DNA of 63,958 nt, filler included, from Octopus bimaculoides (taxonomy: Eukaryota), in NCBI RefSeq assembly GCF_001194135.2. It is 6 parts of 6 records of this genome, joined end to end, with 100 filler letters (N's around TTAATTAATTAA, not from the genome) between each part and the next. Parts side by side here need not be neighbours in the genome. Positions count along the whole stretch, not along the records: positions 9,384 to 19,389 come from NC_068981.1; 5 more parts are not named here. One strand, written 5' to 3'. Both the position numbers and the translations under genes were made by a program. The notes under the pieces are model-generated. The model was not told the origin of the DNA and ran no database searches. It saw only the letters and a program-made list of their open reading frames with translations. This document shows positions 9,384 to 19,489 of this stretch, piece after piece; the first letter of the stretch is position 1; each line of letters begins with the position of its first letter.

Positions 9384-9635
9384 TATATATATATATATGC
9401 TTATAGTGACCAAATATATGCAAACTGTTTGTTAAGAGCAGTACTTTTATAAAGTTATTATTGTTTGTACATAATTAAATATGAAACAGTACATCAGAGA
9501 ATATGTTTGAAAGGTAAGTTTACATTTCGTAATTACTACATTAAATAGCAAGTCAAATTTAAATAGAAAATATACTGGCAAATTTAAAACAACTTTTCAG
9601 GCTTATGACATATAACTACTAAAAATATTGCTTAC

Positions 9636-9665
9636 CTCCGCGCACTATTGTTTCTCTTATCGTTT
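9636..9665 (-). CDS. Micro-exon E9 (30 nt, class beta): (E)TIRETIVRG
   Basis: gagctaattattaatttggttgaattcacag|AAACGATAAGAGAAACAATAGTGCGCGGAG|gtaagc. CTAAT branch-like motif upstream, 30 nt, open. Confidence 0.8.
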
Positions 9666-9734
9666 CTGTGAATTCAACCAAATTAATAATTAGCTCTTAA
9701 TTTAACATGTTTTGTAAGATTAAATAATTAAATA

Positions 9735-10033
9735 TTGGGGCGAGTCAAAGGTTTTGCAATATTTGCATACTTGTCATATTGTGGAGTGTAAATCACGTGA
9801 CTGAAGCAGTCCAAGCCATTGAGGATACTCGCTGAGTATTGCTTCACTCAGTATGTGATTTGAAAGCGCACAGACGAACGTACAATGTAGTCGAATTTGC
9901 GAAGAATTCGAACTAGGCTATAACGACGCAGAAAAAAACAAAAACAGTTGTCGTGCGAGTGGCGAAGGTGCAGTTGTCGAATAAAGCAAATAAGTTACCA
10001 AGATATTGCAAAAAAACTTTTGACTCAACACAA
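9735..10033. mobile_element. Tc1/mariner-type MITE (degenerate)
   Basis: TA|TTGGGGCGAGTCAAAGGTTTTGCAATATT ... AGATATTGCAAAAAAACTTTTGACTCAACACAA|TA. Imperfect ~30-bp TIRs with TA TSD. Confidence 0.7.
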
Positions 10034-10246
10034 TAATTACACTCTATTGTCTTTATATAAGCAAACCATTATTTCCGGAAGGAAGAAAGAATAATTTAAA
10101 TTGCAAATAAAATCCAGAAATAATATTGTAAACATGTTTATTTAAAATAAATATTTGTGTAAGAGATACGATGTATTTGTATCAATAGTATTGTGAGGCA
10201 AATAATCCGAATTAATTGTAAAATTGAGGTTTATAAGTAAACTCAC

Positions 10247-10270
10247 CAATCGTTTCAGCGTACGGTCGAT
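10247..10270 (-). CDS. Micro-exon E8 (24 nt, class alpha-like): (D)RPYAETI
   Basis: ggtttttgatttccatctag|ATCGACCGTACGCTGAAACGATTG|gtgagt. Multiple of 3, phase 1-1, 343 bp from E7 like the other beta-alpha pairs. Confidence 0.7.
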
Positions 10271-10613
10271 CTAGATGGAAATCAAAAACCGTTGTATATA
10301 TTTTTATATAGCTAATTTTACACGTTTCAGCATTTAACAATTCAATTAATATACGAAATATTCTTTGAATTTTATATACTTAGAAATATTGCAAGAGAAA
10401 TACGTGACTATAGATGTGATTAACGCAAAGGAGAATGGATTAAGTTGTTTATTACGCGTATTCTTTGAATAAGATGATGGAATAATAAATAAAAGCGTTG
10501 AATATAATTTATTGCGATACTACCTAATCAAAATAATTGAGAATTAGTAAGCTCCTTACAAGCAGAAATGTGTGATATACATTAAATTTCCAACAACTTT
10601 ATCAAATGCTTAC

Positions 10614-10643
10614 CTATCCAATACTCTGGCTCTGTTATAGTTT
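10614..10643 (-). CDS. Micro-exon E7 (30 nt, class beta): (E)TITEPEYWI
   Basis: ttggttaatttaacag|AAACTATAACAGAGCCAGAGTATTGGATAG|gtaagc. Flanks resemble those of E3/E5/E9. Confidence 0.8.
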
Positions 10644-10919
10644 CTGTTAAATTAACCAAATATTCAATTAAACGATTTTGAAATAAGTATCAAATTAATA
10701 CATCACTAAATTTCAGAAAAGATTGTAGTTTGTATTTGAGATCAGATGTATAAGATACGAATAATTTATCTGGTACAATAAAGATTTGTATCAACTTAAA
10801 TCAGTACAAGATGTTTTGTAAAAGATATAGGATAATGAAGTTTATATCTACATACATCATACATATATCTACATCTCACACACATACAACCATGTGTGTA
10901 TGTATGTGTGTGTCTGTGT

Positions 10920-10986
<67 letters not shown>

Positions 10987-10996
10987 CGTGTGTGTA

Positions 10997-11832
10997 CAGG
11001 GTGCGGGGAATATATTGTCGTCTAAATTACGCAAAAGTGAAAATAACACTGAGATCTCATTTTAACAGATATATTTATCAAAACTACATAAACATATCTT
11101 GAAATTTATTCAATAAAATCGCCATTGGCTTCAACCACGGCCTCCAAACGACTTCGGAATCTCCCGCAACTCTTTTGAGCGGTCTCCTTGTTTAAGTTGG
11201 TGAATGCTGCTATAATCCGTGCCTTCAGATTATCTTTGGTGTCACAAGGGTTTTCTCGCTCAGTTGCATCGGTCTCTCGCTCAACACATAATAATCAAGG
11301 GGGTTGCAGTCTGGGGAGTAGGTGGTAAGATGTTAAGAGTGATGCGGTCACAGAAATTGTCTGACAGCCATGTCAGGGTTCTCCTGCTTGTGTGGCATGG
11401 TGTAGAGTCTTGTTGCCAGACATAAGGTTTTCCAGCAGCCACCCTCTTCACCCAGGGCAGCACTACCTCCTCCAGAGACTTGAGTCTGAGGCCGTGTAAG
11501 AAGATGAATGGAGGCATAACGTCGCCATCACTAGTGATCACTCCAAACACCATGATGTTGAATGGATATTTGATCTTTATCGTTCTTGGTACATGCACGC
11601 TCCTCTGATTGACACCCAAACACTCTGAAATGTTCGTATGGGAGCTTCACCGCGAATGCCAAGCAATACATGTCGTTTCCAGATTTCTGGCAGAGTGAAT
11701 CGCGTCATGGTGCTGTTTTCTCACAGCGATGCCCAACTGACCCTACTGTACTGTGTAGTCGACAAAATCAAAAACAATGCGAATGCGAGAATTAAAAATA
11801 TAAATTGGCGACAATTTACCCATCGCATCCTG
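10997..11832 (-). mobile_element. Internally deleted Tc1/mariner-superfamily transposon, maT (DD37D) type
   Basis: Imperfect 26-bp TIRs CAGG(G/A)TGCG...TTGTCG (19/26 match) with TA at the left end. Transposase relic IMVFGVITSDGDVMPPFIF...WQQDSTPCHTSRRT...DCNPLDYYV...RFRSRLEAVVEANGDFIE* (stop at 11106). 37 residues between the last two Asp after correcting a 1-bp deletion. Confidence 0.85.
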
Positions 11833-11838
11833 TGTATG

Positions 11839-11875
<37 letters not shown>

Positions 11876-12934
11876 GTACATATCATTCATACATATATGC
11901 AAGTATATATATACACATATATACATACACACACATACACACACATATGTTTGTTTGTGTGTATGCTTACATCTATAGATTGGTATATAGGTAGCCCATG
12001 TTATCTTTTCATGGCAAATATCTTATATTAGAATGAATACATATCTCCGTTCAAATTTTAGGCTACAGTTCTGCACCAACATTTTGCATAGCAACACATA
12101 TTTTCAATGTTCATATCCGTTTCTGATAGAAACACTTGGAACACTGTATGCCAACAAGCAAAACAACTTATTTGAAAGAATGATGTAAATTATTACTGTG
12201 TTTAGAAAATAAAACACACGTCGTCAGACAATAGAATATGTGAGAATGAAAACGTTTATTTTCAGTTCTATGTTTGTCTTATCTTTTTACATAATTATAT
12301 GGAGCTCTGCTTGGTCCGTCTTTTGAATTGTTTGGTGATCCGTGAATCAACAATCTCGGATCAACAGAAGATTCAGTATTTTGTAGAGCATTTTATTGAA
12401 TATATTTTGAGTTTATGGGGTGAGATTTATTTTAAGTATTTAACCCGGGTAAATCCGGTTACATTCATACATAGAGACATACATGCATACATGTACACAT
12501 GCACACATGTATTTATATCTGTATATATGGATGTCAATATACATGTACATTTGCAGCCACACCCAGCGTAACCTGGGTTTGTGTGTGTGTGTGTCTGTGT
12601 GTGTGTCTGTGTCTGTGTGTGTGTGTATGCGTGTGTGTGTCTATCAACAATAATAATGAGGATTATTACGAGGTTGCATAGCATCACCCTTAATTCTTTT
12701 TACACATATACAGCTTTACATAGATCTGCATGTTTCAACTACACCGATTAGTAACCGTGCAATTTCAATCCTGCTACAATACTGATACATTTTCTCCTGG
12801 GTCATTACTTGATATCCTTCGAATTAACTGTTTACAGTTTTTCGTTTATTTATTCTGCGTTGCATGATGTAGAGTTGTCCGTTAAGTTAGACGGAAAAAA
12901 TCATGCCATATATGTGTGTGTGTTTGCATATATA

Positions 12935-12995
<61 letters not shown>

Positions 12996-13611
12996 NNNNN
13001 NNNNNNNNNNNNNNNNNNNNNNNNNNNNNNNNNNNNNNNNNNNNNNNNNNNNNNNNNNNNNNNNNNNNNNNNNNNNNNNNNNNNNNNNNNNNNNNNNNNN
13101 NNNNNNNNNNNNNNNNNNNNNNNNNNNNNNNNNNNNNNNNNNNNNNNNNNNNNNNNNNNNNNNNNNNNNNNNNNNNNNNNNNNNNNNNNNNNNNNNNNNN
13201 NNNNNNNNNNNNNNNNNNNNNNNNNNNNNNNNNNNNNNNNNNNNNNNNNNNNNNNNNNNNNNNNNNNNNNNNNNNNNNNNNNNNNNNNNNNNNNNNNNNN
13301 NNNNNNNNNNNNNNNNNNNNNNNNNNNNNNNNNNNNNNNNNNNNNNNNNNNNNNNNNNNNNNNNNNNNNNNNNNNNNNNNNNNNNNNNNNNNNNNNNNNN
13401 NNNNNNNNNNNNNNNNNNNNNNNNNNNNNNNNNNNNNNNNNNNNNNNNNNNNNNNNNNNNNNNNNNNNNNNNNNNNNNNNNNNNNNNNNNNNNNNNNNNN
13501 NNNNNNNNNNNNNNNNNNNNNNNNNNNNNNNNNNNNNNNNNNNNNNNNNNNNNNNNNNNNNNNNNNNNNNNNNNNNNNNNNNNNNNNNNNNNNNNNNNNN
13601 NNNNNNNNNNN

Positions 13612-13651
<40 letters not shown>

Positions 13652-13711
13652 GTGTGTGTGTGTGTGTGTCTGTGTATGCATGTATATACACATGTATATA
13701 TATATGCAAGT

Positions 13712-13743
<32 letters not shown>

Positions 13744-13849
13744 ATATATATATGTACATATATATATATACATATATATATGTGTCTGTGTGTGTGCGTG
13801 TGTGTGTGTTGAGATATATATATATGTTGAGATTTGGCGTTCCAATTGT

Positions 13850-13889
<40 letters not shown>

Positions 13890-14997
13890 CAGTAGCAGCA
13901 GCAGCAGTAGCAGCAGCGAAGATGATGAGGATTATGATGATGGTGATGATGATGATAATGATGATGATGATGATGAGCAGAGACAAACGCAAGCTATTCT
14001 TTAAATATATTAAAAAGTTACTGGGTCAATCAATGTATATTATATCACTTAAACAGGACAAAAGCTTCACGATATACTCTAAAACATTCTCAGATGATCA
14101 AGCGACACCTATATACCAATACAGTAGCATACACGTTATTATACGATAGCGTATATAGTTTCTTAATTCTCAAAAAACAAAAGAAAATCACATGAAGACT
14201 CTACATTTTTCATTTTACTCTCAAGTAACCATATAAGCATTACAAGTTAATGAAATACATATTTCACGAGTTGAACGGAGCACAGATGAAAATAAAACCG
14301 AAAATAACTGACTCTTTTGAAACCTAAGCTTCAAATGTTTAGTGAAGCGTACTTGTAATACGTTTATTCTTCCTCAATAACATACAACACAAGAAACTAC
14401 ACAAGAACATCGGAGCATCGAAATGAAATAGCGAAAAAAGTCATTAGAAATTTCAGAAACAAGCAAACGAAGACATATACACCAGATAACTATAATTATA
14501 AACGTACAAATTCAACATAGATTTTGCATGAGTAAAGAAAGCGCAAAGCAAATTAGAAATTAGTCACCTATCTTTGAATCGGGTTTGGTTATATGTGTGT
14601 GTGTGTGTGTGTGTGTGTCTGTGTCTGTGTGTGTGTCTGTGTGTGTGTGCCTGTGTGTGTGTGTGTGTCTGTGTGTGTCTGTGTTGTGTGTGTTGTGTGT
14701 GCGCGCGCGTCTGTATGTGTGTGCGCACGCGCATGCATATGAGCAGATGTCTGTGTTTGTATTTGATGTTAGCGAATATACATATGCATGGACTTGCACG
14801 TGTTTTAGTACGTGATCTCTTCTAAAAATTGAAAAGGGCGTATATCTTTGTGTGTGTGTGCTACTGTATGTCATGCTTTAGCTATATTATATATTTGTGT
14901 TAGCTATAGATTTCTTCCTATTTATCAACTAATTTCCCCACATGAACAGTGAAGGAAAACATTGAAGGCGATTGAAATCATTCCAAATTAGACTTAC

Positions 14998-15027
14998 CAA
15001 CAGTAGATTCAATTTCAGATGGTTTTT
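14998..15027 (-). CDS. Micro-exon E6 (30 nt, class alpha): (E)KPSEIESTV
   Basis: aattttgactttcactcag|AAAAACCATCTGAAATTGAATCTACTGTTG|gtaagt. Paralog of E4. Confidence 0.9.
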
Positions 15028-15395
15028 CTGAGTGAAAGTCAAAATTAACATAAGTTTGTTGCTCAATTATTTCGCACAAAAACACAAATTTGTTTCTATA
15101 TTTGTTAAAATATTTACATATTCCTATTGCAAAGATTTTGCTACTCAGATCATTTCATTTATTAACTATATATCCAATTTATTTAACACGAGAATGTTTA
15201 TGTCTGGTGTTTACACATTTACAAATATTACAAATTATTTCAATTATTCAAAAAATATTGCCGAAATATTTTCTCATCACTGTACAAAGAAATTATTAAT
15301 ATTATTATTTTGAATATACGAAAGTATGATATATATATTGAGAATGATATTATAAATTCTCATCGCGCCAAGGTAGTTATTCCAAAATTGCTTAC

Positions 15396-15425
15396 CGATG
15401 CGTGATTCAGTTTCCGTAACAATTT
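15396..15425 (-). CDS. Micro-exon E5 (30 nt, class beta): (E)IVTETESRI
   Basis: ttgttaatttcacag|AAATTGTTACGGAAACTGAATCACGCATCG|gtaagc. Paralog of E3. Confidence 0.9.
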
Positions 15426-16890
15426 CTGTGAAATTAACAATGTAATCAATTAACTATTGTTTACAAGATTTTGTAAAATAAACAACATATTTTACCTAAA
15501 ATATTCATGAATATTTAAGATGACTTTAGCAGCATGTATTCAGTGTGAAGCATCAAGTATAGATACGTAAGATAAGAAAGAAATAAAAGGCGCTATCAGT
15601 GGCGTGTGCTGATGGGAATGACAATAAATAGGTTGCATATATCATAGCAACAAAAGTCTGGAGAAAAAATTCATACTTCACATCGAACTTGATATGATAT
15701 ATGCAACACAGAAAGAGCTCTATCAGTACACTCCATTGTACGACCTCATTGGAAGCCACTCATCCAAAAGACGAGAGAAAGATGAAACGATATGTGTATG
15801 TAGTGTGTTTTTGAGAGTGTGTATGTGTGTGTGTGTGAGTGTGTGTGTAAGTGTAATTATGTGTGTGTTTGCATCCGTACGTACGTGTGTGTGCGCGCGC
15901 GTGTGTGCGCGCGCGTGTGTGCGTGTGCTATTTCTATAGTTTAACCTTATTTATACATTAAATCTCTTGATAAAATACATCGATGATAGATACATGTTTG
16001 TGCAATAAAAATAATTGACTCGCAGTCGTTGTTCCAAACAATATATTTGCTCCTATAATATGAAGTATATCGATTATCTTAATTCGGCCGTTAGCTCCTG
16101 CTGTACACTTATAAATACATCTTGAAGACAAAAGAAAATAATAAAATTCCAGAAACGACACAGACAGCAACGATCGGTAAATCAGAAATCTATTAAATCA
16201 GTTAAAGATAATACATAGAATGCATGAAAATAAAGCGCAAAGCAAATTAATTATAGTGCAAACATCTTTGTGAAAGTCGGCTTCACTGAATGTCTAGCTA
16301 CCGTCCCGCTAAACGAGAGAGGAATGCACACCATATATTAGGGGCAAATTTTTAAGAGACTCAGAACCAGACACAGTCGAAATATGAATGGATGTGTGGT
16401 GTGTGTATGTGTGTGTTCATATGTGAGAACAAAGTCTGTATACGTATTCCATTATATCTGATATAGAAATACATCAAAGCAGTAAATCATGATAGATGTA
16501 TATCTGTGAAATGAAAGCAGTATTTGATTCACTGTTTGTTCTCCCAGGGTTTGAAAGATATCTAGTAGAATGCGGGAATAGAAAGTTGTAAACAAATCAA
16601 AAATATTACAAACATATATTTGTGAAAATCACTTATTTTTTCTAGGTGTGTTGTTGGTCAATACACGTGGAATTTAATGCACTGCTTACTAATCAAACAT
16701 TTTGCATAAAATTAATTCATTATATATATTATCATATATATAAAATTCCTGGAAGACGATAAAAATACTGTTGTATCCATTTCCGTTCTGTAAGTCAGGC
16801 TTTGCTGTTTTAGCGAGTGCATGTCTGTATGTGTATGTCTACTTGAGTAAGTATGTGTGAAATGTTACATGTGTACCTCCTCGTATTCTA

Positions 16891-17118
16891 TTGGGTTGTC
16901 CGGAAAGTTCGTGCCGATTTTTAAAGGAAAGAAAAAGGTCAATAAATACTTGCCATTACATTTTTAATCAACCAAATATGAACCATTTTGTTGCACAATG
17001 CGTCTCCATCTTTCCTTTAACTTGAAAATACCCTCTTCCCAGAATTGAGGTGGTTTCATAGCAAATAAGTCGAAAGGTAAGATACTATAAATCGGTACGA
17101 ACTTTCCGGACAACCCAA
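16891..17118 (-). mobile_element. Mariner MITE retaining the transposase C-terminus
   Basis: 30-bp TIRs TTGGGTTGTCCGGAAAGTTCGT(G/A)CCGATTT (1 mismatch), TA TSD on both sides. Internal minus strand FAMKPPQFWEEGIFKLKERWRRIVQQNGSYLVD* (stop at 16964). Confidence 0.9.
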
Positions 17119-17355
17119 TAACTTTGTGAGAAAGTGAGTCAGTTCATGTATGTGTATATGTGTCTTGTGTCATCTCTGAAATATATTTAACATTTAAGGT
17201 ATTAATTTGTTATGATCCATACTTAAACAGTGTAGTTTTCGTCATCACATTTTTTTTTTGCGCAGTTATAAATTTCTCCCTGTTTATGACAACCTACTCA
17301 TGGACATTGAAGCCAAACACTGAAAGCGAGTGAAATTGTTTGAAATTAAACTCAC

Positions 17356-17385
17356 CAACTGTTGATTCAACTTCAGATGGTTTTC
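17356..17385 (-). CDS. Micro-exon E4 (30 nt, class alpha): (G)KPSEVESTV
   Basis: cattttaatttttgttcag|GAAAACCATCTGAAGTTGAATCAACAGTTG|gtgagt. Paralog of E6. Confidence 0.9.
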
Positions 17386-17699
17386 CTGAACAAAAATTAA
17401 AATGAAATACAATAAACATAATGTCCAATTATTTCATTCGCAAACAAAATTGTATATATTTGTTAATATGTTTACATACATATTTATGCATGCGAGTTTA
17501 CTACAATTGTCATAATGATGATCTATTTCCTAAATGTATGCATTGAACTAGACCATGCTTACATCTGTAATTTATTCCATTATAAGTTTCACAAGCTTAT
17601 TTGAATTAGGACATTTTCTCAACGCATACTGAAGTATGATATGTATTCAAAAGAAAGCAATTTTTTTCGAACGTATGTAGTTATTTAAAAATTGCTTAC

Positions 17700-17729
17700 C
17701 TATACGAGATTCGGTTTCTGTAACAATTT
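17700..17729 (-). CDS. Micro-exon E3 (30 nt, class beta): (E)IVTETESRI
   Basis: ttattaatttcacag|AAATTGTTACAGAAACCGAATCTCGTATAG|gtaagc. Peptide identical to E5 with 5 third-position synonymous differences. Confidence 0.9.
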   Translation of the reverse strand, partial: KLLQKPNLV

Positions 17730-18037
17730 CTGTGAAATTAATAACGTAATCAATTAACTTTTGCCTTCATCAATTTGTAAAATAAACAATTATTAAATTG
17801 CTTAGTTTCAATAAAATTTATCAGTAAGTATGCACGGAATTATTCTTCAGGATACTTCCACACTGATTCCGTAAGTATAAATTAATATGAATAACATAGG
17901 TTAACGTTCAATAGTCAATATATTATAGAAAGCGTAGTATTTTACATATTAATTTGTATTAAAGCCAATCGTATTACAATTATTTGCAATGAAAATAGCA
18001 ATTATAAAACGAATAATAGTATAGATAATGTATGTAC

Positions 18038-18240
18038 CATTATTTACATTTGACGGATATTTGTCGAAAAATACATTAGGAATGAGAACCCAGGTTCGAA
18101 ATTTCCCCAAGACACCTGATGAAGGCTGGAGGATATATCAGCCGAAATGTTGTGTTAACAACAAACAAGATGAGGATAAATATCCGTCAAATGTAAATAA
18201 TGTACATAATACCTCATCTCTTAACTATAGAACTGTATGT
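18038..18240 (+). mobile_element. Penelope-like element terminal fragment with short inverted tail
   Basis: Perfect 25-bp inverted repeat CATTATTTACATTTGACGGATATTT (18038-18062 / 18178-18202) flanking a hammerhead motif. Hammerheads plus partial inverted LTRs are typical of Penelope-like elements (inference). Confidence 0.6.
18111..18156 (+). ncRNA. Minimal type I hammerhead ribozyme motif
   Basis: GACAC-CTGATGA-A-GGCTG(gaggatatat)CAGCC-GAAA-TGTT-GTGTT. Stem I GACAC/GTGTT, CUGAUGA and GAAA core, stem II GGCTG/CAGCC, GUU cleavage triplet; position 15.2 is T rather than C. Confidence 0.7.
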
Positions 18241-18280
18241 ATGTATCATATTTTCTTAAATATAGTTAAAAGACACTCAC

Positions 18281-18310
18281 CAACCGTGGCTTCTACCTCA
18301 GTAGGTTGTT
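18281..18310 (-). CDS. Micro-exon E2 (30 nt, class alpha): (E)QPTEVEATV
   Basis: tcttttattccgcatttag|AACAACCTACTGAGGTAGAAGCCACGGTTG|gtgagt. Same length and phase as, and paralogous to, E4/E6. Confidence 0.85.
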
Positions 18311-19283
18311 CTAAATGCGGAATAAAAGATTATGACATCAGAATTCACACCACGTACGAAGAGTAAATCAGAGATATATATAGAAACACAATAAAAAACT
18401 GTTCGTTTGCCTTCACTTTACTAAAGTAGGGATATTCTACAGTGCTATAATTTTTCATTATTATTATTTTGCGAGGACGCAATGCATAATTTCACAATTT
18501 CATATAGATAGTGAAGTTTACAGATAAGTTCCAGTTAGTTACTGAAGGAAATTATGTAACAAACTGGCAAGAATTCATTTTAAGACAGTTACAATTTTAA
18601 TATTTATAGTCATATCCAATTGCACCGTCGATAATTTACAAACATTATTAGTGAGTATGCTGAATAATTTCAGATTATCAATTCTTTTATAAATAACTTT
18701 AACATCCTATTAATAAATTCATTTAGAAATTATGGAATTTTAAAAATTGCTTTTATTATGGGAAGAGCAACGTGTGTTTCAAATTATAACATTCGCTACG
18801 CATACATACAATATGAAGAAAGGAAGAAATTACTTAACATAATTTTTATATATGTGAATAGAACGATTGAGGGGAAACTATGAAACGCGAAAAAGCTACA
18901 TCACATTAACGAAAATAAAACTTTGCACACAATCGGTATCATACTATTGATTACAATATTTTATAATGAGTCTAATTTTCTGTTCAATGAGTATATTTCG
19001 CATATACTAGAGTGTATTTTCTCTGAAATCTCAACAAAATCTTTTTAACTGAAAATAGGTGGGTTTTTGTCTTTTTTTTTTTTTTACATATATCAGGTTG
19101 TATGTTTCTATGTCGAATAATTAACGATTCAAATAGAAGCGAGAATACCCTCCAAAGAGCCAAAGCACATGTACAGCACATATTCCTTCTCAAAAACATT
19201 ACGCTATAATAAAAGGAGGCATTGAAATTAAATTCAACGACAAGCGGAAGCAAAAAGTCATTTGCAAATATTCTGCCACTCAC

Positions 19284-19313
19284 CAACTGTAGATTCCACC
19301 ATAGAATGTGTTT
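19284..19313 (-). CDS. Micro-exon E1 (30 nt, phase 1-1, class alpha): (E)THSMVESTV
   Basis: Minus strand ccttaatctttgtctag|AAACACATTCTATGGTGGAATCTACAGTTG|gtgagt. Canonical AG/GT, 30 nt, open, homologous to E2/E4/E6 (ends ESTV+G). Confidence 0.8.
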
Positions 19314-19489
19314 CTAGACAAAGATTAAGGTAAAATTTGTATTATGTTAGTTACGTCATAAAGAATATAGGATATCAAAAGGTTTATATNNNNNNNNNNN
19401 NNNNNNNNNNNNNNNNNNNNNNNNNNNNNNNNNTTAATTAATTAANNNNNNNNNNNNNNNNNNNNNNNNNNNNNNNNNNNNNNNNNNNN

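Follow-up and report, generated by a model that had tools for sequence, protein, structure and literature searches.

Can a protein-coding gene be carried over some ten kilobases by exons of no more than 30 nucleotides (nt), and what would it encode? This question is raised by a stretch of DNA from Octopus bimaculoides (assembly GCF_001194135.2), here called the window, which is 63,958 nt long and joins six parts of the genome with filler between them. The piece analysed here, at positions 9384-19389 (record NC_068981.1, about 10 kb), carries on its minus strand nine micro-exons, of which eight measure 30 nt and one 24 nt. It falls within the interior of a single minus-strand protein-coding gene which is transcribed and correctly spliced. 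We consider it reasonably probable that the gene contains a constitutively spliced tandem micro-exon array which encodes a polyanionic, probably disordered spacer or spring and which grew by cassette duplication.

The micro-exon array and its reading frame

Each of the nine exons is preceded by a pyrimidine- or AT-rich tract ending in YAG, has G as its last base and is followed by GTAAG or GTGAG. Phase 1, in which the first two bases of an exon complete the codon begun by the final G of the preceding exon, is the sole frame open across all nine joined exons. Because the length of each exon is a multiple of three (3n) and each starts in phase 1, each contributes exactly 10 (or 8) residues. The initial annotation had proposed these nine segments, with their positions, lengths, canonical splice sites, symmetric phase and peptide, and all are present in the sequence as described. 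The exons belong to two alternating families, A and B, which together form a 20-residue repeat, and the spliced peptide consists of the units listed here in transcript order:

19284-19313, minus strand: micro-exon, type A variant, 30 nt, ETHSMVESTV; splice sites and two exact RNA contigs of run X30, leading to 18281-18310 and to an upstream B-type exon
18281-18310, minus strand: micro-exon, type A variant, 30 nt, EQPTEVEATV; joined to 17729 in runs X24, X28, X29 and X30, and also to 19284
17700-17729, minus strand: micro-exon, type B, 30 nt, EIVTETESRI; splice sites and both flanking junctions in RNA
17356-17385, minus strand: micro-exon, type A, 30 nt, GKPSEVESTV; splice sites and the junction of 17700 to 17385 in RNA
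15396-15425, minus strand: micro-exon, type B, 30 nt, EIVTETESRI; junction of 15396 to 15027 in raw reads and a 205-nt X30 contig
14998-15027, minus strand: micro-exon, type A, 30 nt, EKPSEIESTV; joined directly by RNA to 10614-10643
10614-10643, minus strand: micro-exon, diverged type B, 30 nt, ETITEPEYWI; both junctions in RNA, B-type intron flanks kept
10247-10270, minus strand: micro-exon, type A derivative, 24 nt, DRPYAETI; six-column gap in the alignment with A exons, both junctions in RNA
9636-9665, minus strand: micro-exon, diverged type B, 30 nt, ETIRETIVRG; junction of 10247 to 9665 in RNA, followed by a further A-type exon outside the piece

A scan of both strands for AG, then 24 or 30 nt ending in G and open in phase 1, then GTRAG, yielded nine matches on the minus strand and one on the plus strand. 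The same motif in 500 dinucleotide-preserving shuffles of the piece occurred 0.17 times on average and three times at most, both strands together, and the array therefore exceeds chance by a wide measure. An identity scan of the piece revealed no micro-exon copies beyond these nine.

Splicing of the array in RNA

The RNA data comprised raw reads of three runs from the same organism (X24, X28 and X29, about 6% of each run) and the Logan contigs of a fourth, X30. RNA depth falls on the exons alone, and the introns between them have none. Seven of the eight predicted junctions are found exactly in RNA, while the eighth, between 17356 and 15425, agrees but for one ambiguous base. Exact spliced contigs of X30 have a k-mer depth of about 400-530, and one of 205 nt (k-mer depth about 408) spans exons 15396, 14998, 10614, 10247 and 9636. 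The individual junctions, given by the exon ends that are joined, are supported as follows:

19284 to 18310, minus strand: two exact X30 contigs whose overhangs are the neighbouring exons
18281 to 17729, minus strand: raw reads (X24, X28, X29) and an X30 contig
17700 to 17385, minus strand: raw reads and an X30 contig
17356 to 15425, minus strand: the overhang at 15426 matches exon 17356 at all but one base, at which the two contributing contigs may disagree (agreement 0.96)
15396 to 15027, minus strand: raw reads and the 205-nt X30 contig
14998 to 10643, minus strand: the 205-nt X30 contig and four X24 raw reads
10614 to 10270, minus strand: three raw-read runs and an X30 contig
10247 to 9665, minus strand: three raw-read runs and an X30 contig

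The junction of 14998 to 10643 deserves separate attention, as the intron that it removes is interrupted by a gap in the assembly:

10644-14997, minus strand: intron of about 4.35 kb as assembled, excised exactly in RNA; it contains the gap at 12996-13611, microsatellites and a transposase-like remnant

The gap, which lies between exons 14998-15027 and 10614-10643, has (AT)n arrays at both edges, the usual cause of assembly breaks. The tail of the 205-nt contig that is left unaligned at 14998 is the exact reverse complement of exon 10614-10643, and the four raw X24 reads that end at 10644 run on as the exact reverse complement of exon 14998-15027. Since the RNA thus passes straight from 14998 to 10643 without change of strand or frame, both sides of the gap belong to one transcript and no exon from its unread letters is required; a rarely used exon may be hidden inside it. 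The gap-bearing intron is largely microsatellite, with (TG)n and (AT)n arrays at 10893-10995, 12580-12640, 12928-12995, 13612-13781 and 14594-14723 and, beside the gap, adjoining trinucleotide arrays (GTA)20, (AGC)10 and (GAT)19 at 13850-13976.

Symmetric exons could be skipped in any combination, and the initial annotation had expected such skipping and a product of variable length. This expectation is not supported by the RNA examined: the exons are spliced consecutively, and no exon-skipping joint appears at 95-97% likeness in the four runs, which, given the low depth of the raw-read runs, is weak negative evidence. A skip-like joint of 17730 to 19284, which would omit exon 18281, appeared at 80% likeness only. 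It was rejected as skipping because at 97% likeness the contig upstream of exon 17700 enters exon 18281, and it probably stems from a paralogous A-B exon pair elsewhere in the gene.

These observations bear on the proposal that the locus is a micro-exon gene (MEG) of the schistosome kind, in which combinatorial skipping of symmetric exons yields protein variants. The defining trait of MEGs is the possession of very small symmetrical exons with lengths in multiples of three (PMC4350168), and the visible coding sequence of the octopus array likewise lies mostly in such exons; to this extent the likeness to MEGs drawn in the initial annotation stands, and the joint seen at 80% likeness would suit it as well. 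Family membership does not follow, since no sequence similarity was detected (no protein match at E<=10) and MEGs are described as restricted to platyhelminths (PMC4350168). Moreover, MEGs have longer terminal exons, with a signal peptide encoded by the 5' one, and encode small secreted proteins diversified by exon skipping, whereas the octopus exons are repeats, tandem duplicates of two types unlike MEG exons, whose inclusion looks constitutive, with no skipping joint at high likeness and with the contigs adjoining exon 17700 leading to 18281. A schistosome-style MEG is on this evidence very improbable. Neuronal microexons of the SRRM4 type, which are isolated, alternative and neural, measure 3-27 nt and have UGC near the 3' splice site, differ as well: the exons here are of 30 nt, in tandem and included in all reads, and the B-type flanks lack TGC in the 15-20 nt that precede the AG.

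Extension of the array beyond the piece

The initial annotation had placed the terminal exons of the gene outside the segment, and RNA contigs do continue at both ends. Upstream of 19313 an X30 contig enters a B-type exon encoding EVVTEKVTRT, while downstream of 9636 another enters an A-type exon encoding EKPSDVDSTY, which is absent from the piece. With these two exons from RNA overhangs, 11 exons are known in all, each of 24 or 30 nt and of phase 1-1. Reads with near-identical but distinct exons (e.g., EQPSQVDATV) derive from further copies. DNA contigs of three related species match the introns at roughly 96% identity, and their depth is about 10-30 times that of single-copy sequence at exons 17356, 17700 and 19284, as opposed to only about 1-3 times at the rare variant exon 18281. 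We infer that the gene has a few dozen such exons. The peptide IEKPSEIESTVETITEPEYWIDRPYAETIETIR, from the unique end of the array, would be diagnostic for its product.

Coding constraint

Comparison of paralogous exons provides a measure of selection on the encoded peptide. Exons 17700 and 15396, which both encode EIVTETESRI, differ at five bases, all of them third-position and synonymous, and when the A pair 17356/14998 is added, seven of nine differences fall at third positions (binomial P=0.008). Most of the changes that separate paralogous exons are thus synonymous. An alternative would be that the array is spliced but non-coding, for instance as exonised repeats in a long non-coding RNA or an untranslated region, or that it is a chance pattern, and the lack of any homologous protein could be cited in its favour. 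It is countered by the nine motif matches where 0.17 are expected, by the single frame and 3n length common to all 11 known exons, and by an amino-acid repeat that is conserved while the DNA has diverged. The third-position bias, together with the shared 3n length and phase in 11 exons, rules out a non-coding origin for practical purposes, and we regard this alternative as scarcely credible.

One codon departs from the pattern. The first codon of exon 17356-17385 is Gly (GGA) in the assembly and in the major RNA contig, in contrast to Glu, the usual first residue of the exons in the array. In X18, X19 and X20, which represent three related species, and in a minor X30 contig, a C>T change at 17385 gives a Glu codon instead. 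The difference is either a derived or polymorphic change or the mark of a paralogue.

Two exon types and the probable duplication of a cassette

Type A exons, with the consensus EKPSEVESTV, are found at 19284, 18281, 17356 and 14998, and exon 10247 derives from the same type by loss of 6 nt. Type B, with the consensus EIVTETESRI, comprises exons 17700 and 15396 together with the diverged copies 10614 and 9636. The exon pairs 17700/17356 and 15396/14998 represent a duplicated cassette with spacings of 2304 and 2358 nt. Around the cassette exons, alignable islands of 131 nt and 108 nt show 82% and 79% identity, and the remaining intron sequence between the cassettes consists of microsatellite and transposon material. 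The array may accordingly have grown as a cassette of two exons, about 2.3 kb long, was duplicated in tandem; only about 110-130 nt round each exon would have stayed alignable, the rest of the introns having been replaced by microsatellites and transposon debris. Exons of 3n length in phase 1 would tolerate such duplication without loss of frame.

The exons of fibrillar collagens (the 54-nt family) are a familiar case in which the repeat period is imprinted on exon length and growth proceeds by exon duplication. The octopus array resembles them in both respects; however, collagen exons are in phase 0, measure 45-108 nt and encode Gly-X-Y, whereas the octopus exons are in phase 1, measure 30 nt and encode a peptide in which Gly is nearly absent.

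Conservation extends into the introns. When the four B units are aligned, 16 of 27 columns in the upstream flank and eight of nine in the donor are invariant, as are 10 of the 30 in the exon itself. Conservation in the B flanks thus equals or exceeds that of the coding bases, which may point to selection on intronic splicing signals. Two features belong here:

17730-17757, minus strand: conserved upstream intron flank of B exons, TTAATTGATTAC.TT.TTAATTTCACAG, with copies at 15426-15453, 10644-10671 and 9666-9693
16500-16536, minus strand: possible decayed B-type acceptor flank (pseudo-exon remnant), tttcatttcacag, grouped in a repeat family with the B flanks and with a stop codon in the sequence after CAG

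Written over its span, the conserved B-exon flank is TTAATTGATTAC...TTTCACAG, and it includes a branch-point-like TTAAT about 23-27 nt ahead of the AG. This agrees with the established view that exons of such a size have no space for exonic enhancers and rely on strong splice sites and on elements within the introns. In the octopus array, exon recognition would proceed through near-consensus donors (G/GTAAGC or G/GTGAGT, with the slash at the exon end) and through the conserved flank with its TTAAT, so that the recognition signals would not lie inside the exon itself. As a compact natural system, in which donors are strong, flanks are conserved and exonic enhancers find no space, the array lends itself to the study of two questions: the recognition of consecutive micro-exons, and the growth of repeat proteins through duplicated cassettes that leave the frame intact.

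The encoded product

Composition was computed on the 108 residues known from 11 exons. Glu is the commonest residue (23%), followed by Thr (18%), Val (13%), Ser (9%) and Ile (9%), with Pro at 5.6% and Lys (K) at 3.7%; acidic residues amount to 26%, and the net charge is -18. In the Uversky charge-hydropathy comparison the peptide falls among disordered sequences (H 0.423 vs. a boundary of 0.473). No protein match was found for either the 88-residue or the 108-residue spliced peptide, even at E<=10, in a collection of 5.8 billion proteins; a Pfam scan of the spliced product at E<=10 gave no families, the PPAK motif family included, and a PDB sequence search gave chance-level matches only. As a control, the open reading frame (ORF) at 11281-11619 on the minus strand, described below, matches an NCBI Octopus bimaculoides protein in the same collection, which therefore holds octopus annotations from which the micro-exon product is absent. 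The gene is thus apparently unannotated, in keeping with the initial annotation, and the control match also fits the cephalopod host named there; no description of the array was found in the literature on octopus or mollusc micro-exons, cephalopod PEVK, octopus titin or arterial elastomer.

Tandem short exons that preserve the frame and encode a charged, low-complexity repeat segment are shared with the PEVK and PEVK-NTCS springs of titin, sallimus and projectin. The nearest architectural parallel is the PEVK region of insect projectin, which has many small exons, one of just 24 nt, some of them alternatively spliced (PMC3835035). In this light, a giant sarcomeric protein of the titin/connectin, sallimus or twitchin/projectin class could have the octopus array as its elastic, PEVK/PEVT-like part, with Ig- or fibronectin-type exons outside the piece. 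Its short tandem phase-1 exons encode a repeat rich in Glu, Val, Pro and Thr, the spliced contigs are abundant in one RNA run, and Ig-domain exons of giant sarcomeric genes are typically phase 1. The PEVT repeats of C. elegans TTN-1 are Pro/Glu/Val/Thr-rich tandem repeats of a proposed elastic region, and P+E+V+T reach 59% in the octopus peptide, with no sequence similarity detected between the two. Yet the composition speaks against kinship with PEVK segments, in which P, E, V and K make up about 70% or more: the sum is 45% here, and a product of Glu, Thr, Val, Ser and Ile has little Lys or Pro. The octopus exons also differ from those of PEVK springs in their near-invariant length of 30 nt and their two alternating types. 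No Ig or FN3 exon is present within the 10-kb piece, no differential splicing was seen, and neither Pfam (PPAK included) nor the protein search, whose collection includes octopus proteins, returned a relative. The array is consequently unlikely to come from a giant sarcomeric protein of this class.

A second possibility is a secreted or extracellular acidic repeat protein with glycosylated or phosphorylated Thr and Ser residues, which would form a mucin-like stalk, belong to a matrix or bind ions in a gland, the skin or a mineralised structure. The content of Thr+Ser (27%) and of acidic residues agrees with it, as does the status of the gene as lineage-restricted and without homologues; expression, in addition, reaches a very high level in one run and stays low in the other three, a pattern suggestive of restriction to certain tissues. 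However, no signal peptide or extracellular domain is visible in the piece. The mucin-like stalk of the initial annotation fares poorly, as P+T+S amount to about 33% with Glu dominant, below the values above 40% typical of the Pro/Thr/Ser-rich domains of mucins, which are densely O-glycosylated in a secretory or membrane context, and mucin repeats usually sit within one large exon, unlike the micro-exons here. A secreted protein of this type appears quite unlikely.

The favoured reading remains that of a spacer or spring. The product would be a strongly polyanionic segment of predicted disordered or extended form, in which Glu, Thr, Val, Ser and Ile are abundant, and would most likely act as an extensible spacer or entropic spring within a larger protein, resembling the PEVK/PEVT segments of giant muscle proteins in function without homology to them. 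Several points weigh against this proposal. Its function is deduced from composition alone, and the piece contains neither a domain nor a signal peptide, nor an adjoining exon of known type. The beta-branched residues T, V and I make up 40% and alternate with Glu, a pattern that could also fit an ordered beta-rich repeat. Lys is scarce and P+E+V+K reach only 45%, so that by composition this is not a PEVK segment. Constitutive splicing is judged from few reads, and the junction of 17356 to 15425 is supported by a loose end with one ambiguous base.

A broader proposal, which we put forward tentatively and with rather less than even confidence, is that the locus belongs to a lineage-restricted, highly expressed cephalopod gene whose centre consists of several dozen near-identical 30-nt phase-1 micro-exons of two alternating types, which is missing from the octopus protein annotations and which encodes a new polyanionic elastic or spacer protein without detectable homologue. 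If true, this would be the most regular micro-exon array described outside the MEGs of flatworms and a stringent natural test of exon definition by the spliceosome, which would face dozens of 30-nt exons in succession. Exons of 30 nt are regularly overlooked by gene finders and short-read aligners; since such an exon holds no complete 31-mer, the spliced transcript and the genome have no 31-letter word in common. A reference proteome can in this way lack an abundant protein whose exons escape detection. Should it turn out to serve cephalopod muscle, vessel or matrix as a spacer or spring, the product would represent a new sequence class of elastic or polyanionic proteins.

Mobile elements and other features of the piece

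The control ORF mentioned above lies in the gap-bearing intron:

11281-11619, minus strand: ORF of 112 residues, with a local GC content of 43%; its product shares 63% identity with 'uncharacterized protein LOC128250757 [Octopus bimaculoides]'

By eye, its product resembles the C-terminal part of a DDE transposase, and it is probably a transposon remnant in the long intron. Pfam returned no family for this ORF or for the ORFs at 18028-18366 and 11638-11994 on the plus strand, an exact-product look-up of the ORF at 18984-19286 gave no match, and Rfam and tRNA scans found nothing. Two short elements with terminal inverted repeats and one T-rich patch were noted in addition:

16889-17120: element of 232 nt resembling a miniature inverted-repeat transposable element, with 35-nt terminal inverted repeats that are 94% complementary (TATTGGGTTGTCCGGAAAGTTCGTGCCGATTTTTA)
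18038-18202: element of 165 nt with 28-nt terminal inverted repeats that are 96% complementary
19050-19121: T-rich patch (T22 at 19064-19085)

The element at 16889-17120 is transcribed or multi-copy, with an RNA depth of about 100-150, many variant letters and joints of the 'opposite strands' kind. Only some 80 nt separate the element at 18038-18202 from micro-exon 18281-18310, in whose downstream intron it lies; RNA contains it in abundance, and its summed DNA contig depth reaches millions in three related species, compared with about 5-50 for single-copy sequence. Over 14800-17900, a mostly intronic stretch, four small runs labelled 'RNA?' (X13-X15 and X17) contain 46-64% of the 31-letter words, a share far above any that spliced mRNA could account for, and these runs may be nuclear or total RNA, or DNA-type libraries. 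The T-rich patch at 19050-19121 has a high multi-copy depth in both RNA contigs (about 12,000 in X30) and DNA contigs and is probably the tail of another interspersed repeat.

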